Origin: Octopus bimaculoides
Lineage: Eukaryota
Assembly (NCBI RefSeq): GCF_001194135.2
Contig: NC_068998.1
Location: 19,752,207 to 19,797,280, forward strand
Direction: 5' to 3'
Length of the DNA: 45,074 nucleotides
A program made the position numbers and the translations under genes. Below, piece after piece: positions 5,535-44,649 of the stretch; the first letter of the stretch is position 1, and each line of letters opens with the position of its first letter. The notes under the pieces are model-generated. The model searched no databases. It was not told the origin of the DNA and saw only the letters and a program-made list of their open reading frames with translations.

Positions 5535-5611
5535 CTGCCTTTGAAATTACCATCAATGACAAGTTGGTCTTCTCTCGTCTTCAATCTTTTTCATTCCCTA
5601 GCTCTGAACAG
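5535..5611 (+). CDS. SelW2/MIEN1-like Rdx gene, copy 1, penultimate coding exon: (A)AFEITINDKLVFSRLQSFSFPSSEQ
   Basis: Acceptor ttttttttag, donor gtcagt, 77 nt, phase 1 to 0, same size and phase as the copy 2 and 3 exons. Matches the Rdx GAFE[IV]x[IV]NGxL[IV][FH]SK...FP motif. Confidence 0.9.
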
Positions 5612-5669
5612 GTCAGTAATTTCCATTTGACTTTGCTTTTTGTTTCTTGTTTTAATTATCTTCTTTTAT

Positions 5670-6285
5670 TTTGTTTCAGTTATTTGACTGCTGCCATGCT
5701 AGGGCACCACCTTGAAGGGTTTAATTGAACATATTTACCCCACCAGTACTCATTGTTTTTTTAAGTCTGGTACTTATTTTCCTGGTTTCTTTGCTGAACC
5801 ACCAAGTTACAGGGACATAAGCAAACCAACAATGGTTGTCAAGCTGTGATTGTTGGGAGGACAAACACAATACAAAGACGCTCACACACTCACAAACATC
5901 ACCATTGTCATTTAATGTCCATTTTCCTTGTTGGCATCAGTTGGATGGTTTGAAATGATGTAGCAAGCCACCGGGCTGTGCTAAGCTCCATTGTCAGCTT
6001 TGGCATGTTTTCTATGGCTTGATGCTCTTCCTAATGCCAACCACCTTACAGCGTATATTGGGTGCATTTTTTGGACACCAGCACTTGTGAAGTTACCAAG
6101 TAAGTTGCAACACACACACACACACACATGATGAGCTACCACTGAGTTACCATTTACTAAATTCAGTCACAAGGTATTGGTTTGTCTGGGGCTATAATAG
6201 AAAATACTTGCTCAATTTACTGTGCAGTGGGACAGAACCGGAAACCACATGGTTACAAAGTAGGCTTCTTTACCACATACCCTTG
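5670..6285 (-). mobile_element. Cluster of reverse-oriented SINE halves and an RTE 3' tail in the last intron of copy 1
   Basis: Reverse complements of the SINE 3' end (ttgtttcagttatttgactgctgccatgct), the RTE tail (catcatt...gtccatttt) and the SINE head. Confidence 0.65.
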
Positions 6286-6719
6286 CCTTTTATTTTCGTT
6301 TATATAAAGAACGAATAAAATAATTCATGATATTTATCTACAGCAAGGCAGCAAGCTGGCAGAATCATTAACATGCTGGACAAAGTGCTTAGTGGCATTT
6401 CATCTGACTTTATGTTTTGAGTTCAAATTCTGCACTGGGATCAATCTAATTGACTGTTCCCTTCCCCAAAATTGCTGGCCTTGTACCAAAACTTGAAAGT
6501 GATATTTGTCTACAACTACCTTTGAGTATCATTATGGATTCTATAACATACTTCAGTAAATAGAATTTACATACACTTTATCTTGATAACACTGTGATGA
6601 CATTTGAACTGTTAAGAAGTAGGATAGTCTCTTCAAGAACAAAAGAAAAAAAAATGTTTAGCTTAAGAAATAAAATATCCAAATTTGTAGAGCACATGCT
6701 TTTTAAAAATTTTTTTAGC

Positions 6720-7125
6720 CAGGTGCAAGCCTGGCTGTGTGGTAAGAAGCTTGCTTCCCAACCGCATGTTTCTGGGTTCACTCCCACTGCTTGGCACCTT
6801 GGGCTAATGACTTCTACTATAGCCTTAGGTTCACCAAAACCTTGTGAGTGGATTTGGTAGATGGAAACTGAAAGAAGTCTAGTGTGTGTGTGTATTGTGT
6901 GTGCGTGTTTTTGTGCCTCTGTTTGTCCCCCCAGCACTGCTTGACAACTGGTGTTGGTCTGTTTGTGACCCCATCACTCAGCAGATCAGCAAAAGGGACA
7001 ATAAGTATCAGGCTTAAAAAAAAAATAATAATAATTGGGTTGATTTTTTTCAATTAAAACTCTTCAAAGTGGTGCCTCAGCATGGCTACTGTCTAATGAT
7101 TGAAACAAGTAAAAGATAAAAGATA
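6720..7125 (+). mobile_element. tRNA-derived SINE with internal (TG)n
   Basis: A-box-like TGGCTGTGTGG, B-box-like GGGTTCACTCCC, same body and GAAACAAGTAAAAGA end as other copies. Confidence 0.8.
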
Positions 7126-7489
7126 TTAGTAAGATTTGATTAAAAAAAAAAATAAAATAAATATTTCTAATGTTGACTTTACTGAAGACATTGACAATTT
7201 CATTCATGTGTTTCAACGGAGTTTACACTGGTTTGTTAGAAAATTTAGTCTCAGCACTAAAAGCTAATATAACTTGCTTATTATAAAGTACTGATGTTAC
7301 TTTCAGTGGTTAATTGACCTATTAAGTCATAAATATCTGTCATATGTAAAATGAAGTACCAGTGATAATATATGGTTCAGTAAGTTGGTATCTTAGTTAC
7401 TAAGATGTGAATTTATGGATGTATCAACAATAACAAGATATATTCTTATAGTTAGAATTTTTATAATTGTGTTTAAAAATCTCATTTAA

Positions 7490-7698
7490 CTCTTTTGATA
7501 CCAACTCACATGAGGCCACCCCTGGTTCTGTGACTGGAACTTCCTGCTATAAATGAAAATCTTCCATCAAAATTTCATGCTAATTTATGTTCCAAGCACC
7601 AGCTTAAAAACAACAAAGTTATTTTATTAAATTCTTCATTTTCGAAACCAATTGAAACAAAAGCACTGTATTTCAACTGAAATATGGTATTGAAAGGG
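7490..7698. mobile_element. TTAA-flanked MITE (piggyBac-like termini)
   Basis: ttaa|CTCTTTTGATACCA ... TGGTATTGAAAGGG|ttta; a partial copy of the same family lies at ~35905-36050. Confidence 0.6.
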
Positions 7699-8464
7699 TT
7701 TAATATTTTACACTAACATATTCAGACTAGTGTCCTCATATTGATAGTTATAATGTTTCAGCTGTTATGCCCTCTGACATAGTTCAGGTGCCTGTCATAT
7801 TTAGTAAGGTTCTCAAAAATTCATATGGAATCCCCATTTTTGATAACCTCAGTAGGAAGTTATCAGAGTTCAGTGTTTGTACTTATTCTTTCAGTCATCT
7901 TAGCATAGAGATAAACACCATCTGAGGACCTTCAATTAAGGAAAGAAGACTATTAAGCCTATGACCATAAAGAAAATAAGAACTGTTTAAAGCTCTTAAT
8001 TTCCATCACTTAATTGTTTTACAAGACAGTGGGTTAGTAATAAAAGCATTGATTGAGTGTTAATTGTAGTAGTTTAGCCAGTGGGCTTGAGTTCTATTCC
8101 TGAATCAGTCAGACAATAAGTAGACTCTTGTTCAAGCAGAATGAGCAAGTGGCGATGCAAGTAGAAAACTAATGCAACAATGGTTCTGGTGTAGACAATG
8201 GAATGGAAGTAATGTATCTCAAAGGAATTAACAAAGGGTTCAGTTTGAAATTCCAAGAAAATGACAGACATCTGATGAAAGGGAAATGGTATATTAGCAA
8301 TCAAGATGAGGACACTAGTTCAAATACATCAGCAAATAATAATTATAATTTTTCATCTCAGAAACTGAGACAAAATTTGATTAAATATTTTCTGTAAAAT
8401 AGAATTTAAGTTTTTTAAGTCAGTTCTCTAAATGCAAATTGTCTTTTTTTTTTTCTTTTGACAG

Positions 8465-8548
8465 ATTGTGAATTTATTACATGATGTCCAGGCAGGCAAG
8501 ACGATCCCTGTTATTGAGGAATCTAGCTCAGGCTGCATAATTCAATAA
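8465..8548 (+). CDS. Copy 1 last coding exon: IVNLLHDVQAGKTIPVIEESSSGCIIQ* (CaaX)
   Basis: Long polypyrimidine tract plus acag acceptor, phase 0. Collinear codon-for-codon with the copy 3 last exon. Ends C-I-I-Q-stop, like the MIEN1 CVIL terminus. Confidence 0.88.
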   Translation: MVNLLHDVQAGKTIPVIEESSSGCIIQ

Positions 8549-9480
8549 AACTAATTTGTTTTCCAGAAATTTCTGCAATTGTTACACCTTAAACTCTTTG
8601 AGTTTCTTTTTCTTTCTTTTTTAATTTTAAATTAATATATGTTAAAGGTCTTGACTATTGTCTTCTTTTTTAAATCCTCATTGAACTGACATATAGACAT
8701 GGACTGGCTTATATTCCAACATTATGGTATATCATACAACCTGTTTTGTCACAGTAAAGATATTTACCCAGTACCCACTCAGTATTTGCCCAATCAACGA
8801 CAACAGTTCATCTGATTGAATGAGTTAACTTTGTTCATTGGTGGAAGATGCTGAGGTGTTTTCCACACAGTGTATGTGGTAAGCGGCACCTACAAGTACT
8901 AGTTAATACTGAGTAGTCTGTTGTTATGGTAGATGGCCATTCTTAATTCCATGTGGCTACAGGTATGTCTGCAGGAGAGTAGGAGTGTCCATGTATATGG
9001 ATACACAGTGGATCTTGAAAGCTTCCATTTGTTGTATCCACTATGTTGCTCCTTGCTGCCTAGCATCAAAATATGTCACTTCTTCAATTAAGTGATCTAA
9101 TTACTCTTTGCCTTCATGATGAGGTGCTAATTAGCTTTATACATGTATTTTTTTTTTTTTTTTTGCCTTTCATATTCTTTCTTCTTTTTCTTCTCATCTA
9201 TTCTTCTCTTTTCTCTCCCTCTTCACATACTTACCATGATTCTATCTTTAACCTCATTCTCTCTTCTCCTTCTCTCTATTCCAGCTGTCTTTTACGTTAA
9301 GTATTCTATTTCTATAGTTTCTCTTTTTTTTCTTATTTCAAAGTAAATATGCAAAACGTTTCTAGTCAAGGGTGAATTCGAAATTATTCAGTGTCTTTCT
9401 TTTGAAAATTCTGTATGTAACAATTGTAGAACTAAAAATACTTTATATTGACTTATTAAAAAATTTTCATTTTGACTTTC

Positions 9481-9563
9481 TTACTGGTTATTTCTGGTTA
9501 TGAAAATTCTGGTCTAAACATGTATTGACCAGAGTTGGATAAATTGTGAGGAATAACCAGTGA
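9481..9563 (+). promoter_or_regulatory. SECIS element, copy 1
   Basis: ATGA 9500-9503, helix II AATTCTGGTC/GACCAGAGTT, apical loop TAAACATGTATT (AAA 9516-9518), GA 9538-9539, helix I 9481-9495 with 9549-9563. Confidence 0.9.
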
Positions 9564-9593
9564 AAAACTCGACTGAAAATGAATTATTTGGTG

Positions 9594-9604
9594 ATTAAAA
9601 TAAA
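9594..9604 (+). promoter_or_regulatory. Candidate poly(A) signal, copy 1 (overlapping ATTAAA/AATAAA)
   Basis: ~30 nt after the SECIS. ATTAAA sits at equivalent positions in copy 2 (30753-30758) and copy 3 (37628-37623, minus). Confidence 0.55.
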
Positions 9605-9790
9605 AAATGAATATATCATGATTCAGTGTTGTTTCTTAATCATTTTTTCTTCTCTTTCAGTCTTCTTATCAGTTGTTTAATATTAGTGTATGTAGAAAAT
9701 GCGTACAAATTTACATATTTCTCTATGTATACAGGATTGCACTTGACTTCAATAAATCATGTCTGATATGGGGCTCCCAATGTACTGGCA

Positions 9791-11071
9791 CGAGATTCAT
9801 TCCAGAAGTTTTGAGACTTTTTTAGGAGAGGCAATTATAACTGTCCTAGATTATTGTAACTTTAGTATATCATTATTAGACATCTAATAAGCTGACCTGC
9901 CAACGAATTTTTTTTTCTAGAATGAAGGAGACAGCTGTAACAGTTCTTTGAAAAAACCCTACTAAACACTGCTTGTCACAACTGACAAGTTTGCAGAATG
10001 CAGTCGGAACATGAAGACAATTTGGAAGCTTGCTATACAATCAAGTTTTGTATTAAACTGGGCAAAAATGCTACAGAAACCTGCGAAGTGCTTCAGATTG
10101 ATTATGGATTAACTTGTATGAGCTGAGGTTCAAAGATGGTAGAGGGGAGGGGAGAAACAATGAGAGGTGTAAGAGGGAGAGCGATCTCAGAACCTCAGAG
10201 CTAGTTGAGAAACTTCACAGTTTTCTAGATGAAGACCATCATGTACCTATAAAGACAATAAGCGTATAGTTTGGAGTTGATGTGACTCTTGTATGCAAAA
10301 TTATTCATGTGCAAAATTTGGGAAAAGTTTGTTCCCAGGGTGCTCAGTGACAAACAGAAGGAAAGATGTGTTGCTGACAGCAGGGAGATGCTTGAGCTCA
10401 TTACTGCCAATACAAGAGTACTTGAGCCTCTGGCAACCTGTAACAAAAGCTGGATCTACTGTTATAATCTGGAGACTAAGAGACAGAGTACCATATGGAA
10501 GAGTTCTGGCTCTCTTAGACCCAAAAAGACCTGGCAAAGCAAGTCCACCAGGAAATTCACAACAATCCCCTTTTTCGACAGCAAGTGCATCATTTACATC
10601 CACTGAGTTTCCTCTGGTCAGACATTTAATGAAGAGTACTTTGTGGAGGTTCTGAGGGAGATCACAAAAGGCCAGAGCTCTTCCACTTGGGTTGGTGGCA
10701 CCGGCACCAAGATGATGCACTAGTCCACAATTCCACCCTGGTAATGTAATCAACTACTTGACAGAGATGAGAATCAGCACTGTTCCTCACCCTTCCTACA
10801 GTCTAGACTTTGCTCCCTGTAACTTCTGGTTGTTCCCTAAACTGAAGGAGAACCCCAGGGGCAGTGGTCTTGAAGACATTGAGAAGATGGAGGCTGTGAC
10901 ATGGGTCCTGGGCACCTTCACTTTGGAGGACTTTCATGGGGCTTTCACAAAGTGGTTGGAGTGTTACAAATGCAGAAGATCCTACTTTGAAAGTGATTAG
11001 TGTTTTGTATTTCTTTGAATTTAATAAATGTCTTTCTTGTAAAAGCCCCAAAACTTCTCAAATGCACCTTG
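9791..11071 (+). mobile_element. Near full-length decayed mariner element (~1.28 kb)
   Basis: Imperfect ~30-bp TIRs and TA at 11072-11073. Remnants YTIKFCIKLGKNATETCEVLQ, VPRVLSDKQKERCV, CNKSWIYCYNLETKRQS and VPHPSYSLDFAPCNFWLFPKLK. Confidence 0.85.
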
Positions 11072-11181
11072 TACATCTCTGTCTCCGGTCTCTCTGATCT
11101 ACACTTTATCAACTCTTAAGCCCACTCTTTTTTCCTATCTGTTAATGACTTTCTTATTATTATTGCTAACAGCAGGATATA

Positions 11182-11587
11182 GGTGCAGGAGTGGCTGTGT
11201 GGTAAGTAGCTCATTTACCAACCACATGGTTCAGGGTTCAGTCGCACTGCGTGGCACCTTGAGCAAGTGTCTTCTACTATAGCCTCAGGCCGACCAAAAC
11301 CTTGTGAGTGGATTTGATAGATGGAAACTGAAAGAAACCTGTCGTATATATGTATATGTATATCTATGTCTGTGTGTGTGTTTGTGTGTCTGTGTTTGTC
11401 CCCACAACATCGCTTGACAACCAATACCGGTGTATTTAAGTCCCCGTAACTTAGCGGTTCGGCAAAAGAGACCGATAGGATAAGTACTAGGCTTACAAAG
11501 AATAAGTCCTGGTGTCGATTTGCTCAACTAAAAGGCAGTGCTCCAGCATGGCTGCAGTCAAATGACTGAAACAAGTAAAAGAGTAAG
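11182..11587 (+). mobile_element. Full-length tRNA-derived SINE with internal (TA)/(TG) microsatellite
   Basis: GGAGTGGCTGTGTGG...GGGTTCAGTCGC head, family body, AAACAAGTAAAAGAG end. Confidence 0.85.
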
Positions 11588-11904
11588 CAGTCTACCATTC
11601 AGATTATGTCAGCTCTTCACCATCTCCCAATCTTCCATACACCATCCACATACTGTCTAGGTACCTCACATTAAACCTGTTCTGACCCTATCAATAGAGA
11701 CCTCAAAAATATTCTCCAATAGCATATAATTATGACTTGGTCAACAAAGACACAATTACTGTTCATATCAAAGATTGGTTGACATAATTAAAGCCATTGA
11801 AATAACCACAACTAGTAGTTTCCTGATCTCTGCTGATCTTTCCTAGCAATTCCACATTCAAAACGGGGCTGTGCAGCTAAGAAGCTCAGTTTGCAACCCT
11901 GTGG

Positions 11905-12145
11905 TTTTAGGTACAGTCCCAGTACCTTGTGAGTGAATTTGGTAGATGGAAACTGTGAGGGAGCCCATGGCTTGTATGCATGTGTGTATGTGTGTTTTTC
12001 TGTTTTTGCCCCCCTCCCTCATTGCTTAACAACAAGTGGTTTAGTGATTCAGCAAATGAACAAGTACCAGACTCAAGTGCTGGGGTCAATTTCACTAACA
12101 ACCTCCCAAAGCAGTGCTCTAGCTGTGGTTCAATGACTGAAACAA
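11905..12145 (+). mobile_element. Degenerate partial SINE
   Basis: Diverged match to the SINE body (ccttgtgagtgaatttggtagatggaaactg...aatgactgaaacaa). Confidence 0.6.
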
Positions 12146-12586
12146 AGATTAGCTGTGTTATTCATAACACAGCTAATATTGTATTCCAAAGACTAGCCTT
12201 CCTCATCAGGAATTTTGGTAATACACTTTAGTTCTCACCCAGCTGTTGACTCTCCACAAAGTTCAAATAAAACATAGAATGTAATACTGTTGCCACATCT
12301 GGGACAATGCTATTGCTACACACAAACATCCTAAATTACTTTTAAAAGAAGGTCAATCCGTCTGGCTGACAAAGACTCTCTCACCAACACATTACTACTT
12401 CTGACTCATTGACACAAGCAATTTCTTCATTGTATCTCTTCTATCACTACTTCCTCCCTCAAACTTGCTGGCCTTGTGCTAAAATTTGAAACCAGCTTTC
12501 TCATAACATGAAGGGGAATGGGGTAAAGCATGATGTAAGGCTCTGATAGAGGATTTCATTGTTATTGATATAATTTAATCTAACCA

Positions 12587-12752
12587 AGGAGTGGCTGTGT
12601 GGTAAGTAGCTTGCTTACCAACCACACGGTCCTGGGTTCAGTCCCACTGCGTGGCATCTTGGGCAAGTGTCTTCTACTATAGCCTTGGGCCGACCAAAGC
12701 CTTGTGAGTGGATTTGGTAGACAGAAACTGAAAGAAGCCCGTCGTATATATG

Positions 12753-12795
<43 letters not shown>

Positions 12796-13004
12796 TTGCG
12801 TGTCTGTGTTTGTCCCCCTAGCATTGCTTGACAACCGATGCTGGTCTGTTTACGTCCCCGTAACTTAGCGGTTCGGCAAAAGAGACCAATAGAATAAGTA
12901 CTAGGCTTACAAAGAATAAGTCCTGGGGTCGATTTTCTCGACTAAAGGCGGTGCTCCAGCATGGCCGCAGTCAAATGACTGAAACAAGTAAAAGAGTAAA
13001 AGTA
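12587..13004 (+). mobile_element. Full-length, young tRNA-derived SINE
   Basis: A-box-like 12592-12602, B-box-like GGTTCAGTCCC 12635-12645; very similar to 23565-23982. Confidence 0.88.
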
Positions 13005-13869: not shown

Positions 13870-14268
13870 ATTCTTTTATTTGTTTCAGTCATTTGACTGT
13901 GGCCATGTTGGAGCACCACCTTTAGTCAAACTAATCAACCCCAAGACTTATTCTTTGTAAGCCTAGTACTTACTCTATCGATCTCTTTTGCTGAACTGCT
14001 AAGTTACATGGACATAAACACACCAACATTGGTTGTCAAATGATGGCGGGGGGACAAACACAGATGCACAACATATACATACATATCTATCTATATATAT
14101 ATATATATACAATGGGCTTTTATCAGTTTCTGTCTACCAAATCCACTCTCAAGGCTTTGGTTGGCCTGAGGCTATAGTAGAAGACACTTGCTCAAGGTGC
14201 CACACAGTGAGACTGAACTGGGAACCATGTGGTTGGGAAGCAAGCTTCTTACCACACAGCCATGCCTA
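13870..14268 (-). mobile_element. Full-length tRNA-derived SINE, reverse orientation
   Basis: Reverse complement of the 12587-13004 family; additional 3' half at ~13740-13865. Confidence 0.82.
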
Positions 14269-14272
14269 TATA

Positions 14273-18794: not shown

Positions 18795-19056
18795 TCTGGC
18801 TGTGTGGTAAGAAGTTTGCTTCCCAACCTCATAACTTTCTCCAACAACTCTGTGCACACAGAGGCATTGATTCTTAAGCCCTATGAAAAAAAGTGACGAG
18901 GCATAACGTCTCCCTCGTTGCTGATGACTCCCATTGCAGTGCATCTTGGGCAAATGTCTTCTACTATAGTCTCGGGCCGACCAAAGTCTTGTGAGTGGAT
19001 TTGGTAGATGGAAACTGAAAGAAGCCCGTGATATATATATATATGTATATATACAT

Positions 19057-19087
<31 letters not shown>

Positions 19088-19590
19088 ATACAAATGATAT
19101 ATGAGCATATGCATGTATACATACATATATGTACATACCTACATCTACATGTATATATATAGATGCATATCAGGGTACAGGACGTCAGAAAAGGAACGGG
19201 AACATAAAGCACAAAAACGGACTTTTTTTTACAGACAACAGAATGAACACATAGGAAAACGGACGAGCCACTTATGGAACTATTCCTTTATCAGCTGCCT
19301 CTATTCTAAACTAGGCGTTTATATGTGTGTGTGTGTGCAGGCGTGTTTGTGTGTATGTATATATGTGTGTGTGTGTGTGCTTTTGCGTCTGTGCTTGTCC
19401 CCCATCACAGCTTGACATCTAGTTTTCGTGTGCTTACGTTCCTGTATCTGAACGGATCGGCAAAAGAGAACGATCGAATAGATACCAGGCTTGAAAAACA
19501 AGTAAGTACTGGGGTCGATTCGTTCGACTAAGATTCTTCGAGGCTGTGCTAGGGCATTGCCACAGTCAAACGACTGAAATAAGTAAAAGG
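18795..19590 (+). mobile_element. SINE 5' half (18795-19035) and 3' half (~19380-19590) separated by microsatellites and extra sequence
   Basis: Family head and body motifs on both sides of (TA)/(CA)/(TG) tracts. Confidence 0.6.
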
Positions 19591-20582: not shown

Positions 20583-20944
20583 TTGGCATACCTACACAAA
20601 TGTGTCCCCACCACCGATTTTGTTTCCTCACAACTTTCAGAAAAATTAATATTTTTTAAAATATTTTCTATAAATGCCTTTCAGGTAGTGTAGATTACAA
20701 TNNNNNNNNNNNNNNNNNNNNNNNNNNNNNNNNNNNNNNNNNNNNNNNNNNNNNNNNNNNNNNNNNNNNNNNNNNNNNNNNNNNNNNNNNNNNNNNNNNN
20801 NNNNNNNNNNNNNNNNNNNNNNNTTGAAGTGACATGTGTAGTACACCAGTCCCTGCCAAAAAGCATTGAAGCCTTGAGGCTCCACCATTAGCTACAATGA
20901 TATGCTAAAAATTCATCATAGTGTCCTCTGGGTACAAGTCCATA

Positions 20945-21670: not shown

Positions 21671-21982
21671 AAAGTTGAATGGGTGGCATGCTGAAAAGTT
21701 ATAGCCAATAGTAACAAAAACGAAAAAGTTGAAATTTGAAAGAACGGAATTCTTTTAAAAGAATTATAATCTCTGATGTTTAAAATAAACAAATATGATG
21801 GAATTTTAGAAAAGAAAAAGTTACTGGTTGGGTACTTTTTTGCAAAACATCACCATTAATTTTTTTATTTAATTTTAATATTCAATACTAAAGTTTTTCA
21901 TTTCACAATTCCTCTTTTGTTATTTAATATTACAACATTTCTTTAGATCAGCGAAGTGTCGTTTGATTTACCTCCAGTAAAA

Positions 21983-22074
21983 ATGTCAGAAAATAGAAGC
22001 TCAAGCTCAACAATTGACGACACAGAAAAATCTTCTGTGTCACAGAAACACCTTCGTGTGGAAATTGAATACTG
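21983..22074 (+). CDS. Copy 2 first coding exon: MSENRSSSSTIDDTEKSSVSQKHLRVEIEY(C)
   Basis: Acceptor tttctttag before 21947, ATG at 21983, donor TG|gtgagt. LRVEIEYC matches the Rdx beta-1 strand (MIEN1 VRIVVEYC). Confidence 0.87.
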
Positions 22075-22290: not shown

Positions 22291-22329
22291 GTCTTTGTAT
22301 TTATTATCAACATGAAATTGGTGAAGAAA

Positions 22330-22940
22330 TTTCAGGTATGAAAGCAAGGTCTAAATTCAAAAGGTTTTAGAGTTAATTTGGCAAAGACCAAAGTCTTAGT
22401 AAGTAGAAAAACAGACAAATCACAAATCCTTTCAGAGAGAAAAGGTGTGGGTAAAAACTCCATAAGGTGTACCTGGTGTAAGCTATGGACACATAAGAGG
22501 AAAGTTAACAGAGAAAATAGTCTTTGCGTGTGGCAAATGTGCAGGTACAATAACACTTGGAATGTACAGAAAATAGACTTCATCAAATGCTTGGAGAGAT
22601 ACTTAGAAGTAGTAGATAGCTTCTGTTACCTAGGTTACTTAGTCAGCAGTGGAAGAAGATGCTCTAAGAATATAGCTACTAGAATGTGAATGGGCTGGGC
22701 AAAGTTCAGAGAGCTACTTTTCTTGGTAACAAAGAGTTTCTCTCTCCGAGTGAAAAGCAGAATGTATGATACCTGTGTGCAAACAGCCATGTTCCAGAGG
22801 ACCTGCAAAGGCTTGAAATAAATGAAGCTAGCATGCTCTACTGGATGTGCGATGTGTGTATGTATGACAGAGTATAAGTGTTTTAGGAGAAAAATTGGGT
22901 ATCAGAGGCATGAGATGTAGTGTGCAAGAGAGAAGACTGT
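22330..22940 (+). mobile_element. RTE LINE fragment
   Basis: NLAKTKVLVSRK, CTWCKLWTHKR, DSFCYLGYLV; same family as 3830-5325. Confidence 0.8.
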
Positions 22941-23564
22941 GCTGGTATGGTAAATGAGCTACTTACCACACAGCCACTCCTGCGCCCATTTAGTAAATTA
23001 ATTAATATTGGTTTCAAATTTTGGCACAAGGCCTGCAATTTTGGGGGAGAGGGTAAGTCAATTATATCAACCCTAGTGCTCAACTGGTACTTATTTTATT
23101 AACCGTGAAAGGATGAAAGGCTAAGTCAATCCTTGTGGTATTTGAAATGAGAATGTAAAGTAGGAAGAAATGCCGCTAAGCAGTAAGAAGACAGGCTGCT
23201 GGGCATTTTTCTGTGTAGTAACAATTCTGTTAGCTTGCTGCCTTAGAAAATTAATTAATACTAGTGGGACCTGTGAATATTTCACGGAATTAATAGTAAA
23301 TCTATTGGGTTATTTGTGAGAACTTTATCCAAGAAACCTGGAAGTGTAGCTTATGTTGTGACTGTATGGAAAGATAGTCACTCATCCGCTACTCATTGAA
23401 AAGTGGGAGAAATTGGAATACGATGATTACTTAATGTACTTTATATGTACACTTTACATACTTTATGTACAATTTTATAGACTTAATATAAAGCACTCAT
23501 AAAATAGATATTCACTCTTATTTTTCCCTTTTACGCATAAGCAAAAAAAAAAAAAGATTCCCAT

Positions 23565-23732
23565 AGGAGTGGCTGTGTGGTAAGTAGCTGGCTTACCAAC
23601 CACATGGCCCCAGGTTCAATCCCACTGCATGGCATCTTGGGAAAGTGTCTTCTACTATAGCTTCGGGCCGACCAAAGTCTTGTGAGTGGATTTGGTAGAC
23701 GGAAACTGAAAGAAGCCTGTTGTATATATGTG

Positions 23733-23783
<51 letters not shown>

Positions 23784-35103: not shown

Positions 35104-37659
35104 CACACTGAATAATAAAATTCACAATTTCTGGAGAAAAAAGACAAGATAGTCATGCTTTGTATCCCTTTACTCAATCAGGGCTAAACTGGTATTAAAC
35201 AACAATGAGAATTAAATCATGAATGTTTGCTACAAGCTTATCAATAACACTGTGACACTTACTATATTTTCAACCATACAAGTCAAATTTTTCTAGCCAA
35301 AACTTACAACCAAAAAAAGCAAGTTGACTTATGACTTTCAAGGACAAAAATTCCGATGTGAAATGCAGCAGGATTTGGAAAGATGATAATGTTTGACTGT
35401 TTACACTGTATATTATATCAACTTATCTGTTAGAACATATGGTAACTGTTACTAGTCTTCTTCATGTGCCATACTTACAGGTGTTGGTGATCACAGACCT
35501 CTTTTCTCTGTTCAAGGCTTTGTCTTCTAATATCATGTTCAATGAACTTGAACTGATGCATCATGTTAAAAAGATTTTTGTTCATCTATGATCTTCAGTA
35601 TTTGTTAACACTATCTATATAGGATAGCTATGAGAAGCCATAACTCTGTAACATTGCTAAGTTTTTGCACTTGTTTGTTTATATAAGGATGAGTTCTACA
35701 TATGCTCTTAGGACTTTTTTCCTCAGTCTTATTGATAGATATTTATTTGACAATATATGAGATCTCACAAAAAACAACCTTGGCCAGCCCAATCCTTTAC
35801 ACAATTTTTTTGATGTTTTTCCTGTCTGATGTAATGATGATTTCCAAATCTTCAACTCTTTGGTACAGCCTCCTTCTCCAAATTGTTTTAAAATTATCTA
35901 AAAACCTTTCATCAGAATTTCATATCAATTTGTGTCCAAACAAGAGCTTAATAATGACAAAATTGTTTTACTAAATTCTGTATTATTTTCAAATTAATAT
36001 TGAAACAAAAGCAGCATATTTAACAGAGATATGGTAACAGAAAGGTTAAAGCTGTCAACTTGTTTCAAGATTGCTCTACTAAGTTTCATGCTTTAAATTG
36101 GTGATACTTTGACATTTATCATTGTCTTTGTTTTGTTTTCATTAACAGTAGTAACAAATATTTCTAAATATTTCACTGACCTTGCTGTGAGGACTGCATC
36201 ATCTGCATAACAGATATTGCTCTTTTCTTTTCCTATCTGTGTACTTTTTTTAATGGCTTATTGAAGAAGTAGTAGTAAAGCTCATGGCCATACAGATTTG
36301 TGAGATTAGTACACTTGATGTTTGTAATAGGTAAAAAAAAGGACTGCAAATAGTAATGCATGTGTGCATACATGTGGAAGTGACATGCAATGAGCTACCT
36401 CAGATGAGAAGAGATCATTGTAACAGTGGTGGAAGAAGTACAATGATAAGACAGTGTGTCTGAGAGCCAGAGATAATAGTATGTTGAATAGCTTTCTTTT
36501 GGATGAAGTTAGGATATTTGAGCTTATAGCAACTGCTGCAGTGTCTCAGATGTTGGAACAGTATTATATTGTAGGTCATATTTGAATTTTGTAGAGAATA
36601 AATAGGTGCTCAGAGATGGAACTATATTCTATCACTGAAAAGGAAAGCTAGTCTTTAAGACAGAGATTTTGCTGTACTGGGACAACCAAGAAAGATCATC
36701 AGAAGCAGTGAGAGTTAGCCTGATAGCATTTGATTTATTGAATAAGTTACTCCTGATTGTATGTTGTCCAAGTCTAGAAAGGGTGGAGGATAAGATTAAT
36801 CAACATGAGCATCTTTGTACTGTTGAATGAAACAAGATTGCCATAAATTGACTGAAAAATATCTTTGAGATCACTGCTCATGGAAGCAACACAGGCTTGA
36901 TCTCACATATATAGGCTGGATATGGATTACCTGTGTAGAAGGTTAGAAGGGAGTGAAGAGTAAGAAGATTAGCAAAGGAGTGAGTATTATTAAAGGTTAT
37001 AGTAAGCTGTTTATGTAAAACTGGAAGAGTGAAGATGCACCAGAATCGATAGTGTGTGGGTCAGAGAGAGCCCTATTTGTGAATGGTGTATACAGTGATA
37101 ACTGAAGAGGATTTGCTTTCTAAAGTTAACTAGTGAATACAATGAGCATATTTATATGTTATTAAACCTCTTCAGTGAAAAATATTCCAATTAGTTAAAT
37201 CATATTGATTTGGAAAGTATTAACATTACTGTAACATTACTGTACCTAGGAATACACACAAATGTCTCTCATTTCAAACTTTTCAAGTCAGACAAGCAGC
37301 TAAGAAATTTAGAAAAAAAAAAAAAAAATTAGAGTTGTGACAACCAATACTAAAAGGAAAGTACTGGAACCAAAATACTAAAAATGGCTGTAACTGGGAA
37401 TAAAAACTGGGTCATGGACTCTGTGACTCTTTGCAAAGCAAACTTTCCAATTCCATGGCTCTGGTATTCTACAGATAGAAATATCTAAATTTACAAATGT
37501 ATCTTACTCATGTCAACAATGATAAATGAATGTATTTTATGATAATGCAAAGTTTCAAACAAGAAATTGTTTAAAGAAATAAAAGAAATAATGACCAGAC
37601 ACAATATAATGTTTTTTTAAAATTTAATTTTCAAATAAATAATTTTCTGTTGAGTTTTT

Positions 37660-37741
37660 CACTGGTTATTCCACACAATTTATCCAATTCTGGTCGATAC
37701 ATGTTTAAACCAGAATTTTCATAACCAAAAATAACCAGTAA
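37660..37741 (-). promoter_or_regulatory. SECIS element, copy 3
   Basis: Minus strand: ATGA (37722-37719), helix II AATTCTGGTT/GACCAGAATT, loop TAAACATGTATC, GA (37684-37683), helix I present. Confidence 0.9.
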
Positions 37742-38632
37742 GAAAGCCAAAAGGAAAATTTTTTAAAAGTCAATATAAACATTTTCAGTTTCATGATTGT
37801 TACATATAGAATTTTCAAAAGTAAGGCATTGAATGATTTTGAATTCACCCTTGACTATAAAACTTTCTGTGGCTGGTTAAAAAGCTTATTTGTGATGAGT
37901 TAGAAGAATATTAGAGCTGAGTAGTCTAATGAGAGGAAAGAGGAATAAATAGAAAATAGATAACACAGCTGAGAAGAGAGGTGTAGATTTGTGAGGAGGG
38001 GTGGGAATAGGAAATATGGAAGGGAGAATATCATGGATAAAGGGGGGAGGGAGTCGGAAAAGAGTAAGAGGAGGAGGAGGAGTATCAGTGAAAATGGGTA
38101 AGTAAAAAGAAAGAAGCATCGAACAGAGAGTGGGGAAGGAGAAACTTTTAAAAACTGGTGGAGCAAAGAAAAGGGGTGAAGGAAAAAAAAAAGAGGACAA
38201 AGATATAGAAAGAGAGAAAATAGAGAAACTGGATGATTGAAGTGAATAGAGCAAAGTCGGGATAGGACAAAAAGTGAGTGACCGAAGTGTGTAGAAGGAA
38301 GAAGGAAATGGAAAAAAGGGGCAGAAAGTAGGTGAGTGAAAAGAGTAGAGGGGGAACAGGGATAGAAAATAGGAAACAAGAAACTGAGATGAAAAGAAAA
38401 GTTCACAGGTGTAAAGTGAATTAGCACCTCATCATGAAGGCAGACAATAATTGTTATAATCACTCAGTTGTATTACATTTTGCTTCTCAATATAATTGTA
38501 TGCAGAGCAGCCGTAAGGAGCTATATGAACAATGCAGTGAATAGATGCTTCCAGTATCCGATATGTATCTATTTATACAGACACTCCTGTAGATATACTT
38601 GCATTCACATGGAATTAAGAATGGCCATCCAA

Positions 38633-38647
38633 CACACACACACACAT

Positions 38648-38718
<71 letters not shown>

Positions 38719-39358
38719 NNNNNNNNNNNNNNNNNNNNNNNNNNNNNNNNNNNNNNNNNNNNNNNNNNNNNNNNNNNNNNNNNNNNNNNNNNNNNNNNNN
38801 NNNNNNNNNNNNNNNNNNNNNNNNNNNNNNNNNNNNNNNNNNNNNNNNNNNNNNNNNNNNNNNNNNNNNNNNNNNNNNNNNNNNNNNNNNNNNNNNNNNN
38901 NNNNNNNNNNNNNNNNNNNNNNNNNNNNNNNNNNNNNNNNNNNNNNNNNNNNNNNNNNNNNNNNNNNNNNNNNNNNNNNNNNNNNNNNNNNNNNNNNNNN
39001 NNNNNNNNNNNNNNNNNNNNNNNNNNNNNNNNNNNNNNNNNNNNNNNNNNNNNNNNNNNNNNNNNNNNNNNNNNNNNNNNNNNNNNNNNNNNNNNNNNNN
39101 NNNNNNNNNNNNNNNNNNNNNNNNNNNNNNNNNNNNNNNNNNNNNNNNNNNNNNNNNNNNNNNNNNNNNNNNNNNNNNNNNNNNNNNNNNNNNNNNNNNN
39201 NNNNNNNNNNNNNNNNNNNNNNNNNNNNNNNNNNNNNNNNNNNNNNNNNNNNNNNNNNNNNNNNNNNNNNNNNNNNNNNNNNNNNNNNNNNNNNNNNNNN
39301 NNNNNNNNNNNNNNNNNNNNNNNNNNNNNNNNNNNNNNNNNNNNNNNNNNNNNNNNNN

Positions 39359-39389
<31 letters not shown>

Positions 39390-39407
39390 CATATACACAC
39401 ACACACA
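38633..39407. repeat. Microsatellite plus 640-N gap inside the copy 3 3' UTR
   Basis: Flanks align with contiguous copy 1 UTR sequence around 8920-8940. Confidence 0.8.
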
Positions 39408-39834
39408 TCACTGCTACCACAACAGGCTACCCAACATTAACCAGTACATTTAGATGCCACTTACAACATACACTGCAATTCAAACATCACAAGACATCTC
39501 ATCACTAAACAAGGTAAACAATGAAGTGTGTTTTTGTTGTTGACTGGACACATATTGAGAAGGATAACATGTAAGGGTAGCAATACGTACTGGATAAATA
39601 TCTTCACTATAACAAGACAGGTTGTACGATGTAGATCATGATACTGGGATGTAAGCCAGTCCATATCATAGCTATATGTCTGCGTCATGAAGATACAGAA
39701 AAGTATGATAGTCAAGGGCTTTAATATGTATTAAATTATAAAGGAAGCATCAAATGAAATTGCAGGGAGTTTAAGGTGTAACATAACTGCAGCATTTTCT
39801 TGTAGATATATTAGCTTTATAGAGTTCAGCAGAC

Positions 39835-39900
39835 CTATTCATCTTTTGAAATGACAGGGATTGGTTTACCTGCTTTGGCATCACGCAATATACATAAAAT
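39835..39900 (-). CDS. Copy 3 last coding exon: ILCILRDAKAGKPIPVISKDE* (TAG), no CaaX
   Basis: Acceptor ttcttttcag, phase 0, collinear with the copy 1 last exon; 3' UTR homology follows. Confidence 0.85.
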   Translation of the reverse strand: MLCILRDAKAGKPIPVISKDE

Positions 39901-39959
39901 CTGAAAAGAAAAAGTAAATAAATAGATAATACTCTAAAAATTTATAATAAATTAGTATA

Positions 39960-40260
39960 TATGTATGTGTGTGTGTGTGTGTCTTTGTGTCTGTGTTTGT
40001 ATCCCACCATCGTTTGACAACTGATATTAGTGTGTTTCCATCCCTGTAACTTAGCGGTTTGGCAAAAGAAACTGATAGAATAAGTACTAGGCTTACAAAG
40101 AATAAGTCCTTTAAGGTGAATGAATTAACCCCAGTACTTATTTTTAAAGCGTGGTACTTATTCTGTTGATCACTTTTGCCAAACTGCCAAGTTACAGGGA
40201 AATAAACAAACAAACAATGATTGTCAAAAGCTGGTGGGACAAACAAACACACAAAGACAA
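39960..40260. mobile_element. Two opposed SINE 3' halves followed by a (TATG)n/(TATC)n microsatellite to ~40565
   Basis: Family motifs on + (gtaacttagcggtttggcaaaaga) and on - (cttttgccaaactgccaagttacaggg). Confidence 0.6.
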
Positions 40261-40535
40261 ACATATGTATGTATGTACGTTTGTGTGTGTGTGTATGTAT
40301 GTGTGTGTGTATGTATGTATGTATGCGTGCATGTATGCATGCATGCATGTATGTATGTATGTATGTATGTTTGTGTGTATGTATGTGTGTGTATGTATGT
40401 ATGCGTGCATGTATGTATGCATGCATGTATGTATGTTTGTGTGTGTGTGTATGTATGTGTGTGTATGTATGTATGCATGCATGTATGTATGCATGCATGT
40501 ATGTATGTATGTATGTATGTATGTATCTATCTATC

Positions 40536-40566
<31 letters not shown>

Positions 40567-40568
<2 letters not shown>

Positions 40569-40953
40569 TTATTATTCTTATATAAGAATGCTGTTGATAG
40601 TGACTTCAAAGATTTGGTCAGTTAGGCCATAGTTAGACTGCAGTTAGTCTCTGTTGAGTCTATAAACAAACACCAAATGAACTCTACTGTTTACAAAGTT
40701 CTACATGCATGAATACATTCTAAACAATAACATACCCCAAATTTAATCAATCAAAATTTTTCCAAGACACCCCTCCCATAACAACCAATTACAAAAGCCT
40801 AATTACCACCCCACTCAAACCCACATAACCAAAGATGATTTCAACTCAACAGAGACTTCATAAAAGCAAGACTGCACCACAGTCTGACAATGGCTTAGCT
40901 GGCTGAAAGTTTTAAGTCACTGTCAACAACATTTTTGTATAAGAATAATAAAT
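40567..40953. mobile_element. Inverted-repeat element (~90-bp arms) in the last intron of copy 3
   Basis: atttattattcttatataagaatgctgttgatagtgactt... versus ...aagtcactgtcaacaacatttttgtataagaataataaat. Confidence 0.7.
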
Positions 40954-41194
40954 TTGTACTCTACAAAAGTATTGAGTAACCCATCAGATTGATTAAAGAT
41001 AAGTTCACTGCCATCAATTCGTTGCAGGAGAGTTTACTACCATCAATTCACCGTGAATGAAGTTCACTGTGAGGATAGTTCACTACAAGGAAAGTTTACC
41101 AAGAAAAATATATCCATAGCATCTCACCATTAATAGTTAAAAACTATTTTATTGAAAGAAAAAAATGAAAGTAATGGAGATCAATATGGGAAAT

Positions 41195-41285
41195 CAGTGA
41201 ACACTCCTTACAGTGAACATTCCTTATAGTGAACATTCCTTACAGTGAACATTCCTTACAGTGAACATTCCTTACAGTGAACTTT
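41195..41285. repeat. 16-bp minisatellite (CAGTGAACATTCCTTA) x5 plus a partial unit
   Basis: Units start at 41195, 41211, 41227, 41243, 41259 and 41275. Confidence 0.9.
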
Positions 41286-41766
41286 CTCTGTGGTGAATAA
41301 ATGACGGACATGCATCAGATTAATGTAAAATTGTTTTTATTATAACTGAACATAAAAAGAAACATCAATACACACACACACACGATTTTAAACTTGGGTA
41401 TACACCTTGTAGTATACCATTTAAAGCCTGTTCACTGCCTTTGACTACCTGATGAGTTGTTGTACCTGTAATTCAAAGGGCCAGCCTTGTTACATTCTGT
41501 GTCATGTTGAATTTCCCTGAGACCTATGTTAAGGGTAAATATGTTTGTGGAGTGCTCAGCTACTTGCATGCTAATTTCACAAGCAGGCTGTTCCTTTGAT
41601 TGGATCAACTGGCACACTCATTGTAATAACTGACAGAGTGCTGTATAGTAGTACTGGAACAACTATGATATTTAATTTCACAGTGAAAAAGGGTTAAATA
41701 CTGTGACAATGTCTTCAAAATAAAATATCTCTGTTTAGTATCTACATCTAAGTTCTTTTTATTTAA

Positions 41767-42001
41767 TCCTTTAGTGCTCATATTACTCATATTACTTCAT
41801 ATTACTCAAATGTAGTAATTAACTATTCACACTATTTTGAATAAATTATGCACTATCTTGTAGCTTTGAGATTTTGATAATGTAATTGTTTATTCTTGGA
41901 ATGACATTGTAGGGTAGGTGTGACATGGCAGATCTGGCCAGTTTGAATATAAAACAGGTAGAATATTTGGGTTGGATATGGTTGGATTAAATGCTAAAGG
42001 G
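41767..42001. mobile_element. piggyBac-like MITE, degenerate ends
   Basis: ttaa|TCCTTTAGTGCT ... AATGCTAAAGGG|tcaa; body matches 15116-15329. Confidence 0.7.
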
Positions 42002-42149
42002 TCAAATGTGCAAATAAATTTATAGAAACAAATGCAAAGATAAATATCATGAGTTATTTTTTTTCATTTTTTATATATAAAAAATCGAAGGGAAATGCAC
42101 ATTTGAAATAAGGAATAATTAAAGGTTAAATGAAATGGAAAATATTTAC

Positions 42150-42226
42150 CTGTTCATGGACAGCATTAGAACCAGACTCAAGTCGAGAGTGAATAAACTG
42201 ACCATTGACAGAAACTTCAAAGGCAC
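42150..42226 (-). CDS. Copy 3 penultimate coding exon: (G)AFEVSVNGQFIHSRLESGSNAVHEQ
   Basis: Acceptor atatattag, donor gtaaat, 77 nt, same phases as the paralogous exons. Confidence 0.88.
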
Positions 42227-42789
42227 CTAATATATGAGATGGGTTCAATTAGAGATGTTTGCAAGCGTTGAATGCAAAAATATTTCCTACACTATAACAT
42301 TAGGCAACAGAATTTTGAAAAACCTATAAATTATGAAATCTTGCTTCCAGTAAAGTTAAAAATACAACCCCCACCCCCAAAAAAAAAACTTACATTGTAA
42401 AGTCCATGACAATTTTAGTTTAAATATAAAATAATTTTGTTATTTTGGTGACAAAAGAACTTAGTTATGAATAACCGCTGCCTGACTGGTCACGTGCCGG
42501 TGGCATGTGAAAAGCACCATTCGAACATGATTGTTGTCAATGCCACCTGACTGGCTCCCATGCCAGTGGCACGTAAAAAAAGCACCCACTACTCTCTCGG
42601 AGTGGTTGGCATTAGGAAGGTCATCCTGAAACTTTGCCAGATTGGATTGGAGCCTGGTGCAGCCTTCTGACTTGCCATCCCTCAGTCAACTGTCCAACCC
42701 ATGCCAGCATGGAAAGCAGACATTAAACGACGACGACGATGACAATGATATATATATGTATATATACATACATTGATATATGGACAATA

Positions 42790-43520
42790 CGAGAGGGTAC
42801 CCAAAAGTAACTGGAAAGGTTCTCTGTGGGACAAGACCATTGTCATTAAGGCTTCCTTTACTAGAAGCCACTTGATGCGACCCTCAGGCATCAGTCTGCT
42901 GACCAGCAGCATCATGTACAGCCATATAGTGCATCTTTGTTTTGCAGTGCTTCTCCTCTGTTTGTCAATTTTTGTGATGGCTGAAACAAAGGAGCAGTGT
43001 GCTTCCATGAAATTCTGTTTTCTATTGAAGAAAATGGTTGCTGAAACAATTGTCATGCTTCAAACAACTTACAAAGATACTGCCATGAACGAAACACAAG
43101 GTTATGAGTGGTTTTCACACTTTAGGAATGGTCAGTTGTTGCTTGAAGACCGACCTCGTTCAGGGCAACTGTCAACCTCCCGAATGAATGAAAACATCAT
43201 GAAAATTCATGAACTGATCTTGGAGGACCATCACTGAACAATTGACAAACTTGTTGATATGACTTGTGTGTCCTAGAGTGCCTGCCAACGAATTTTGAGT
43301 GAGGAATTGTGAATGAAAAAGAGGTGCAGCAAAATGTGTGCCTCGCTTGCTCACAGAAGATCAAAAGCAGTTATGACTGAATGCATGTTCTGAACTGAAA
43401 GAACAATTGGAGTTGATCAGGACTTTTTTTTCGAAGGCCATCACTGGTAATGCTATGGAATTTTTAGATGTGGAAGAGGTGAAAGAAAAAATAACAGAGG
43501 CGTTAATAGGCATCACTTCT
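42790..43520 (+). mobile_element. Internally deleted mariner remnant
   Basis: EQCASMKFCFLLKKMVAETIVMLQTTY...YEWFSHFRNGQLLLEDRPRSG, ILSEEL; TIR-like start TA|CGAGAGGGTACCCAAAAGTAAC. Confidence 0.78.
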
Positions 43521-43529
43521 GACCCTTTG

Positions 43530-43700
43530 CAGAGGCCTGGCAAGGAGCCTTCTGGCAAGGAGCCTTCTGGCAGCAGTCCTCTCCAACCAGGGATTGACTA
43601 CAATCTCCTGTAGCTTTACATGGCCATCTGAATTAAGTCTAAGGCCCTGTTTAGGGTTGTGGGGTGGCATCCCATCACCATCAAAAGAGACACCCATAGA
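43530..43700 (-). mobile_element. Tc1/mariner-superfamily transposase fragment
   Basis: VSFDGDGMPPH...GLRLNSDGHVKLQEIVVNPWLER; similar family to 17590-18080. Confidence 0.6.
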
Positions 43701-44018
43701 CCATTACAGTTTGGAGGAACTTTGTTTTCATGATACAGGGATCACCTCTTACAACCTCCACAATGTTCACGAAGCATTAAGTAGTAGTCATGATATCAGC
43801 ATTTTGATATCTGGCACAAATCATCATAATACAGGGAACTCTTTTCCAATTTTCAGATGGCTTCCAGTCCTCTATGTCAGGTAACTTTTTCTCAACTACA
43901 ACTTTAATCTTTAAGCTCTCCAATGCCATTGACTGTTCACCAATACATCAAGCTTTTCCTGAAGAAAGGAGGCATAAAAATCATCAAATTTATCCCAAAG
44001 ATCCTATACATATATGCA

Positions 44019-44106
<88 letters not shown>

Positions 44107-44124
44107 CACACACATATATATATG

Positions 44125-44290
44125 TATATGATGGGCTTCTTTAGGTTTTCATGTACAAAATCCGTTCTTAAGGCTTTGGTTGGCCCAGGGCTATAGTTGA
44201 AGACACTTGCTAAGGTACCATGCAGTAGGACTCAACCCAAGTTCACATGATTGGGAAGCAAGTTTCTTAATCACACCGTCATGCCTATGG
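44125..44290 (-). mobile_element. SINE 5' half, reverse, preceded by (TA)n at 44010-44125
   Basis: Reverse complement of the family head. Confidence 0.65.
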
Positions 44291-44548
44291 TACCACAAAA
44301 AGTAGATTTGCTATACCAGTCTTCATTCCTATCAAACCTACTTTTAATCATCATTGCATCTCTTGCTAAATAAACTATCCACCAGGTTTTACATGCAATA
44401 TTTCATCCTAAAGATCGTTGTTCTAAAAAATACTTCTGTTACATTGTTGAAAAAATGAAGTAACCTCCAACTGTGTTATGTGTCTATTTAGCCAACTGAT
44501 CTGAGAGACAAATGTGTAATACTTATATAATAATAAAACAAATCTCAC

Positions 44549-44649
44549 CAAAAGTCTTGCTAATAATGTCTACAACTTTAGCTTCAGGAAACTCATTCTG
44601 GATGTCTTTACGGAGTGAATTCATCTTGTTCCATCCACCTCAGGCATCA
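44549..44649 (-). CDS. Copy 3 Sec-containing exon: (C)DA-U-GGWNKMNSLRKDIQNEFPEAKVVDIISKTF(G); TGA at 44642-44640
   Basis: Acceptor ttgttttatag, donor G|gtgaga, 101 nt as in copy 2. The Cys codon requires a TG-ending upstream exon that is not in the window. Confidence 0.88.

Follow-up and report, generated by a model that had tools for sequence, protein, structure and literature searches.

A probable cluster of SELENOW2/MIEN1-type selenoprotein genes in Octopus, mis-modelled in public annotations

Gene structures at the locus

The DNA analysed here is a stretch of 45,074 nucleotides from Octopus bimaculoides (RefSeq assembly GCF_001194135.2, contig NC_068998.1, positions 19,752,207 to 19,797,280), called the window below, with positions counted from its first base. 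In it we identified three visible paralogs of the Rdx family, named G1, G2 and G3, all of them incomplete within the window; G1 and G2 lie in tandem on the plus strand, and G3 is convergent to them on the minus strand. The region from G1 exon 3 to G3 exon 2 very probably represents the greater part of a cephalopod gene cluster for SELENOW2/MIEN1-type selenoproteins. Each gene would comprise four coding exons and encode a protein of about 87–157 residues with a thioredoxin-like Rdx fold, in which a Cys-x-x-selenocysteine redox motif (CxxU, where U is selenocysteine, Sec) would fall at the boundary of exons 1 and 2. The UGA codon of this motif would be read as Sec by means of a selenocysteine insertion sequence (SECIS), a hairpin near the 3' end of each mRNA. 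Recoding through a 3' SECIS is the standard mode of Sec insertion in eukaryotes.

An earlier note on this DNA had proposed three sets of exons with the same sizes and phases, and every exon that it listed was recovered by direct reading and by tblastn, with GT-AG splice junctions throughout. Wherever they are visible, the exons of G1, G2 and G3 have identical sizes (101 and 77 nt) and the same phases, and paralogous exons are 66–73% identical. The alignment of intron flanks that the same note had described was also reproduced, positions 7171–7427 matching 26314–26592 at 67% identity (E 3e-16). Since intron positions and phases have been preserved among them, the copies are genomic duplicates and not retrocopies, as had been argued.

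An in-frame TGA within the CxxU motif is visible in two of the three window genes, G2 and G3. The assembled G2 reads MSENRSSSSTIDDTEKSSVSQKHLRVEIEY-C-QS-TGA-GGWKRMESLRK...GAFEVSING..., and G3 reads (C)-DA-TGA-GGWNKMNSLRK...GAFEVSVNG...ILCILRDAKAGKPIPVISKDE followed by a stop, while the G1 peptide, from exons 3 and 4 only, runs from AAFEITINDK to IVNLLHDVQAGKTIPVIEESSSGCIIQ and a stop. The motif comes directly after the first beta-strand (VEIEY-C-QS-U-GG in G2, (C)-DA-U-GG in G3), and the CxxC motif of MIEN1 and insect homologs has a Cys at the position of the TGA. Ahead of its Rdx domain, G2 carries a Ser-rich, length-variable N-terminal tail with an EKSSVSQ repeat. This extension has 30 residues in the window and 70 in O. 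vulgaris and O. sinensis, the difference being a tandem expansion of an (E/D)KSSVSQ-like unit (L002 47161–47372; L004 3663–3874; such labels are our handles for the sequences compared).

The exons missing from the window can be placed by comparison with O. vulgaris. The CxxU exon of G1 was not found in positions 1–5534 by tblastn at E 50 or by a motif regular expression. A candidate string at position 3935, 'CQ*GVGW' (asterisk, stop codon), was rejected, as it sits within a reverse-transcriptase fragment. Intron 2 of G1 is 16.9 kb long in O. vulgaris, and positions 340–3671 align within it at 87–93%, which puts G1 exons 1 and 2 ahead of base 1; by O. vulgaris collinearity, the CxxU exon would be about 7.7 kb upstream of the window. 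Outside the window, the G1 motif was read as HIEY-C-NS-U-GY in O. vulgaris and in an RNA contig, L003. Similarly, G3 exon 1 was not found in positions 44650–45074. Its O. vulgaris counterpart (L001 2281–2363) precedes exon 2 by 7.6 kb, which places the exon beyond base 45074.

The window DNA is AT-rich and interrupted by six runs of N, each bordered by TA/TG microsatellites. No visible exon, reading frame or SECIS touches or crosses any of these gaps, and order and orientation across the gaps listed in Table 1, which include those in the 3' untranslated regions (UTRs) of G2 and G3, agree with the gap-free O. vulgaris sequence. Positions 26641–26808 match L001 22855–22700, positions 27809–28828 match L001 22288–21304, and the O. 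vulgaris G2 exon 4 is at L001 22626–22546. Because this exon falls between the two blocks that flank gap 27091–27779, G2 exon 4 most probably lies within that gap. A repeat insertion starts at 26809; homology to O. vulgaris stops at 26808 and returns in the microsatellite after the gap.

SECIS elements

An Rfam scan of the whole window at E<=1 returned no SECIS, only microsatellite-driven microRNA matches (mir-297 and similar), and the SECIS elements were located by a pattern scan followed by local Rfam scans. The pattern scan found three homologous hairpins with the ATGA core, a 10-pair helix II, AAA in the apical loop, the 3'-side GA and a long helix I, so that all SECIS core features, among them a helix II of 9 or more pairs and an unpaired AA(A) in the apical loop, are present in the three window elements. 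Each element lies 3' of the stop codon of its gene, at about 0.9–2.5 kb, and is followed after 30–45 nt by an ATTAAA signal, which bears out the proposal of one SECIS per gene. In the local scans, SECIS_1 (RF00031) was the highest-scoring Rfam family at each of the three sites, with 29.1 bits for G1 (E 5e-4), 19.6 bits for G2 and 29.6 bits for G3 (E 3.7e-4); the G2 site has two weak matches, of which mir-3914 has a lower E value (0.15) than SECIS_1 (0.2).

The hairpins are conserved beyond their surroundings. The G1 and G3 elements are 95.9% and 95.8% identical to their O. vulgaris orthologs, and the G2 element is 96.6% identical to those of O. vulgaris and O. sinensis, which makes 96% identity for SECIS orthologs across species versus 85–94% for the surrounding DNA. 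A consensus fold of the window elements with these orthologs has 27 pairs, and 96.3% of its cells are paired; with the partners slid out of register, the share falls to 30–56%. Compensatory changes on both sides are seen in two pairs, and the remaining changes are for the most part G-U wobbles. Between paralogs, the G1 and G3 elements are 86.5% identical, versus 66% for the adjacent UTR and coding sequence.

Table 1. Coordinates of the genes, SECIS elements, signals and gaps. Positions refer to the window unless another sequence is named.
Feature	Position	Strand	Description
G1 exon 3	5535–5611	+	77 nt; AAFEITINDKLVFSRLQSFSFPSSEQ (AAFEITIN...); direct reading and tblastn
G1 exon 4	8465–8548	+	IVNLLHDVQAGKTIPVIEESSSGCIIQ (...SGCIIQ); stop TAA 8546–8548; CaaX box CIIQ
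G1 SECIS	9477–9567	+	ATGA core 9500–9503, AAA apical loop, GA 3' side
G1 poly(A) signal ATTAAA	9594	+	3' of SECIS
Gap	20702–20823		intergenic, 1.2 kb upstream of G2 ATG
G2 exon 1, coding part	21983–22074	+	MSENRSSSSTIDDTEKSSVSQKHLRVEIEY (M...LRVEIEY) plus TG of Cys codon
G2 exon 2	24121–24221	+	101 nt; C-QS-U-GGWKRMESLRK...; Sec TGA 24128–24130
G2 exon 3	24683–24759	+	77 nt; GAFEVSINGNLFFSHLESCCYPDSDK (GAFEVSIN)
G2 exon 4 (putative, hidden)	gap 27091–27779	+	ortholog VVALLHDVQDGKKPPVVERSNSRCTIL, then stop; CaaX box CTIL
Gaps	28829–29606, 29920–29929		G2 3' UTR, between hidden stop and SECIS
G2 SECIS	30636–30725	+	ATTAAA signals at 30753 and 30766
G3 SECIS	37745–37655	-	ATTAAA signal at 37628
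Gap	38719–39358		G3 3' UTR, between stop and SECIS
G3 exon 4	39900–39835	-	ILCILRDAKAGKPIPVISKDE (...SKDE, then stop); stop TAG 39837–39835; no CaaX box
G3 exon 3	42226–42150	-	77 nt; GAFEVSVNGQFIHSRLESGSNAVHEQ (GAFEVSVN)
G3 exon 2	44649–44549	-	101 nt; (C)-DA-U-GGWNKMNSLRK...; Sec TGA 44642–44640
G4 (O. vulgaris)	L007 (OX597831.1:56866897-56903986): exons 14165–14193, 21795–21895, 23674–23750, 27034–27090		SECIS 28381–28497

Conservation in other cephalopods

A peptide spliced from the exons given in the earlier note has one close database relative, a 72-residue 'hypothetical protein' of Octopus vulgaris. The O. vulgaris chromosome OX597831.1 is gap-free and collinear with the window at 85–94% identity; it has complete copies of G1, G2 and G3, each with the TGA, and supplies every exon missing from the window. 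In O. sinensis, G2 and G3 are arranged as in the window.

In O. vulgaris the cluster includes a fourth gene, G4, in divergent orientation about 18 kb past G3 exon 1. It reads MVVEVSIEY-C-QA-U-GGQNRM...KAVH followed by a stop, with 101- and 77-nt exons and a SECIS of its own, and would presumably be found just past base 45074 in the species of the window. The cluster of three genes proposed earlier is correct for what the window contains, but it has at least four members in O. vulgaris.

Spliced transcripts of this kind were found in relatives. L003 (Logan contig SRR16213284_4277) is a spliced G1 mRNA reading from MTEHDVCGIASDLNVHIEY-C-NS-U-GYEDRV... to CIIL and a stop. Its exon 3 (L003 223–300) is 100% identical to that of the window and its exon 4 plus UTR 94.9% identical, and its junction 300/301 corresponds to the window junction 5611/8465. 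L005 is a G2-type spliced mRNA from an 'octopus' metatranscriptome, and L006, L008 and L009 are G1-type mRNAs of a more distant cephalopod. Among the runs behind the RNA contigs, SRR3401912 is described only as 'octopus'. L008 is a full-length polyadenylated G1-type mRNA. It has a UGA in frame, and about 1.45 kb downstream of its stop, about 140 nt ahead of AATAAA, there is a hairpin resembling a SECIS (SECIS_1 21.3 bits, fold z-score -4.2).

The TGA is kept in all orthologs that were examined, namely O. vulgaris G1–G4, O. sinensis G2 and the five RNA contigs L003, L005, L006, L008 and L009, and the G2 exon 2 protein is 100% identical between the window and O. vulgaris. A Sec motif in all three genes, as first claimed, is therefore visible in the window for G2 and G3 and is present in the O. 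vulgaris copy of G1, but the G1 exon that carries it lies outside the window.

Family membership and the CaaX box

All three peptides score above the Pfam Rdx (PF10262) gathering score of 22.6 bits, with 48.9 bits for G2, 38.9 bits for G3 and 27.5 bits for G1, the last from its C-terminal half only; full-length G1, taken from L003, reaches 62.5 bits and O. vulgaris G4 64.3 bits. The best match among solved structures is human C17orf37/MIEN1 (2LJK, E 3.5e-9), while SELENOW (2NPB) is matched only at E 0.43. The genes thus stand nearer to MIEN1/SELENOW2 than to SELENOW1, SELENOT or SELENOH. Both the Rdx assignment and the likeness to MIEN1 had been anticipated from the exon motifs. An exhaustive HMMER search, run with an alignment of database proteins whose N-termini lie beyond the Sec position, gave 334 family representatives, nearly all of which, among those inspected, end in a CaaX box; the named relatives, from an ant, a thrips and a crinoid, are annotated as MIEN1 or MIEN1-like.

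SelW2 has been described as the Sec-containing relative of the Cys-type Rdx12 (MIEN1), with tandem copies SelW2a and SelW2b in zebrafish (PMC3316567), and the relationship assumed in the earlier note agrees with this source and with PMC13134290. According to the latter (2026), MIEN1 arose by duplication in jawed vertebrates, fishes have multiple Sec-containing copies, and all invertebrate genes of the SELENOW2/MIEN1 group fall in the SELENOW2 branch. With MIEN1 arising in jawed vertebrates (PMC13134290), the octopus genes would not be orthologs of MIEN1 itself but co-orthologs of the ancestor of SELENOW2 and MIEN1; their assignment to the SELENOW2 branch follows the same paper. They are further copies of a known selenoprotein family, and the family itself is not new.

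Like the SELENOW2 genes of fishes, amphibians and invertebrates, the octopus genes encode small proteins of Rdx fold in which CxxU lies close to the N-terminus, their 3' UTRs contain a SECIS, and they share with them the occurrence of tandem Sec-containing duplicates, as in zebrafish SelW2a/SelW2b. They differ in forming a cluster of three genes (window) or four genes (O. vulgaris) in mixed orientation, in having two members without a CaaX box, and in the long Ser-rich N-terminal extension of G2. With MIEN1 (C17orf37, Rdx12; 2LJK), the alignment extends over 85 residues, from CxxC/CxxU through the GAFE...NG...FSKLE core to the C-terminal region, and G1 and G2 share its CaaX box, which is CVIL in MIEN1; unlike the octopus genes, amniote MIEN1 has a Cys at the Sec position and lacks a SECIS. 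SELENOW (SelW1, 2NPB) shares the Pfam Rdx family and a CxxU in the same place, with a far weaker match. To our knowledge, neither the C-terminal extension nor the CaaX box is present in SELENOW.

The CaaX box of G1 is CIIQ in the window, CIIL in L003 and CTIV in O. vulgaris, and that of G2, whose window exon is assigned to the gap, was read in orthologs only (CTIL, CTIV). The box is missing in G3, which ends in KDE, and in O. vulgaris G4, which ends in KAVH with a dead CSTL beyond the stop. The early stop of G3 is common to its O. vulgaris ortholog (...SKKE-stop-VC). Past the G3 stop in the window (39834–39826, minus strand), the codons read V-C-stop, a remnant of the ancestral C-terminus, and past the G4 stop (L007 27091–27114) the old frame reads 'TNLGCSTL'. 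Because the stops of G3 and G4 are at different positions, there may have been two losses of the box, or a single loss with later divergence. Prenylation and membrane tethering are established for MIEN1 (PMC4536591, PMC6738349). By analogy, G1 and G2 would probably be prenylated and membrane-tethered via their CaaX boxes, and G3 and G4, with premature stops just ahead of the box, would probably be soluble. Redox activity of the proteins and a division of labour between anchored and soluble copies are, like Sec insertion, predictions.

In a neighbour-joining tree of 94 alignment columns, the cephalopod G1–G4 sequences form one clade in 78% of 50 bootstraps, and those of G1 and G2 type from other cephalopods are nested in the G1 and G2 clades, respectively, at 100% support; deeper nodes, including SELENOW2 versus MIEN1, are not separated. 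The comparison set comprised ant, thrips, scorpion, sand fly, fluke, crinoid and coral sequences plus unlabelled ones, some of which look like vertebrate MIEN1; the alignment is short, most outgroups carry no taxon label, and no other mollusc was identified among them. Because the cephalopod sequences group together and those of other cephalopods are placed within the G1 and G2 clades, the tree supports a lineage-specific expansion.

Errors in public annotation

Public gene models of these genes fail at the in-frame TGA, in the manner that the earlier note had predicted. In the proteins P0001 (O. vulgaris G3), P0002 (O. sinensis G2) and P0025 (O. vulgaris G4), the first residue is a Met encoded downstream of the TGA, and P0005 fuses exons 3 and 4 of G1 to exon 1 of G2 and ends at the TGA. 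The public G4 model, CAI9736225.1, is N-terminally short and has a spurious first exon. The cluster had also been called hidden: it is indeed mis-modelled, but NCBI already labels O. sinensis G2 as 'migration and invasion enhancer 1-like'. The literature that we searched contained no description of these genes in cephalopods.

Alternative explanations and selection

Several observations weigh against reading this region as a cluster of selenoprotein genes. G2 exon 4 was not found by tblastn in the readable window sequence, and the SECIS_1 scores are all below the family gathering score of 35 bits. The G1 transcript L003 shows a 5% difference from the window in the UTR. It comes from run SRR16213284, which is listed as the mealybug Planococcus ficus from Mexico (PMC13340311), a listing that points to contamination of the run by octopus RNA from another sample. 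Among the RNA contigs obtained, which are G1- or G2-type and from relatives, none represents G3 or the species of the window. Finally, the window and O. vulgaris orthologs are separated by 29 nonsynonymous and 5 synonymous changes, giving a ratio of nonsynonymous to synonymous rates (dN/dS) of about 1 or higher on these small counts (34).

Public gene models that start after the TGA or stop at it, together with the Rfam scores under threshold, might be taken to mean that the TGA is an ordinary stop, that the products are short N-terminal peptides or Met-initiated C-terminal fragments, and that the hairpins are not SECIS elements. We consider this highly improbable, given that conservation is continuous through the TGA (VEIEYC-xx-TGA-GG on both sides), that the TGA aligns with the Cys of CxxC homologs, that the exon phases put both halves in one frame, and that hairpins with every SECIS core feature stand in the 3' UTR of each gene. 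It is barely conceivable that the three copies are assembly artefacts, whether uncollapsed haplotypes or mis-joins across gaps. The six microsatellite-flanked runs of N could be seen in that light, as could their lengths, which differ from O. vulgaris (about 350 bp there where the window has 640–780 N). On the other hand, the O. vulgaris paralogs are only 37–49% identical in protein, with dS of 0.6–0.85 among G1–G3, and the same order and orientation recur over the full length of the window in the gap-free, chromosome-level O. vulgaris assembly and, for G2 and G3, in O. sinensis; redundant haplotypes, which the earlier note had already doubted, do not account for these data.

A third alternative is decay: the cluster might include at least one duplicate that is decaying or non-functional, G3 with its missing CaaX box being the most plausible candidate, with a TGA and a SECIS that were inherited and are no longer used. 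A premature stop cost G3 the CaaX box that is near-universal in its family, comparison of the window G3 with its O. vulgaris ortholog gives a dN/dS of about 0.95, the overall value is about 1 or higher, and the RNA contigs obtained include no G3 transcript. However, the G3 frame, splice sites, TGA and early stop are at the same positions in the window, O. vulgaris and O. sinensis, its SECIS is more conserved across species than the flanking DNA, the independent CaaX-less paralog G4 is intact with its Rdx score of 64.3 bits, and the substitution counts are too few to tell neutrality from moderate constraint. We therefore regard decay as unlikely and retain the reading of the region as a selenoprotein gene cluster.

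For the close comparison between the window and O. vulgaris, dN/dS was rejected as a sign of constraint, being about 1 on 34 substitutions; the counts fit relaxed or diversifying selection over strong constraint. Over longer distances, dN/dS is 0.22 for G1 (L003 versus L006) and 0.45 for G2. The genes are fast-evolving yet constrained, with purifying selection over the longer distances.

A more far-reaching scenario can be put forward only tentatively, and we think it rather doubtful. Under it, a four-gene cephalopod cluster would descend from a single SELENOW2/MIEN1-type ancestor and would have split into two prenylated copies (G1 and G2) and two soluble ones (G3 and G4), the CaaX box having been lost through separate stops, with diversifying selection acting on a lineage-specific Sec redox or signalling module. 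If this were true, the dN/dS of about 1 or higher among close Octopus species would point to diversifying selection on that module.

Surrounding DNA

Transposon debris lies within and between the genes at positions 3791–4550, 22325–22949, 24925–25226, 33588–34626 and 42773–43234. It includes reverse-transcriptase fragments (RVT_1, E 1.6e-7), adjoining a weak, sub-threshold PHD-finger match, as well as copies of one reverse-transcriptase element in G2 intron 1 and G1 intron 2 and a mariner/Mos1 HTH_48 fragment in G3 intron 2. The TA/TG microsatellites that border most gaps (17–87, 19028–19164, 28011–28157, 29804–30112, 38638–38722, 40203–40539 and 44005–44134) yield spurious Rfam matches, among them mir-297, mir-3149 and mir-1277, far below gathering scores.

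Within G1 intron 2, positions 568–1719 of the plus strand hold an intact open reading frame of 383 codons, which is kept as a 360-codon frame in O. vulgaris (L002 21264–22346), where the surrounding DNA is 93% identical. It matches no Pfam family above threshold, the only match being a weak one to Cdc6_C (18 bits), and it could represent a gene nested in the intron or else a domesticated transposon protein.

G2 and G3 are separated at their 3' ends by about 4.2 kb in the window (30973–35193) versus about 1.4 kb in O. vulgaris (L002 59184–60626), which indicates an insertion in the window, with reverse-transcriptase-like sequence. Positions 35193–38136 are unusually conserved, at 91–93%, more than the G3 SECIS alone accounts for.

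Implications

These results reveal no new mechanism and no new family. The O. vulgaris and O. sinensis annotations carry faulty models of four octopus selenoprotein genes, and the exon coordinates given here correct them; they provide another concrete case for the use of dedicated tools in selenoproteome surveys. They also add a mollusc example to the lineage-specific expansions of SELENOW2/MIEN1, which have been documented mainly in ray-finned fishes. The presence of CaaX-bearing and CaaX-less Sec paralogs side by side offers a natural comparison that could help to clarify the biochemical role of MIEN1-like proteins.

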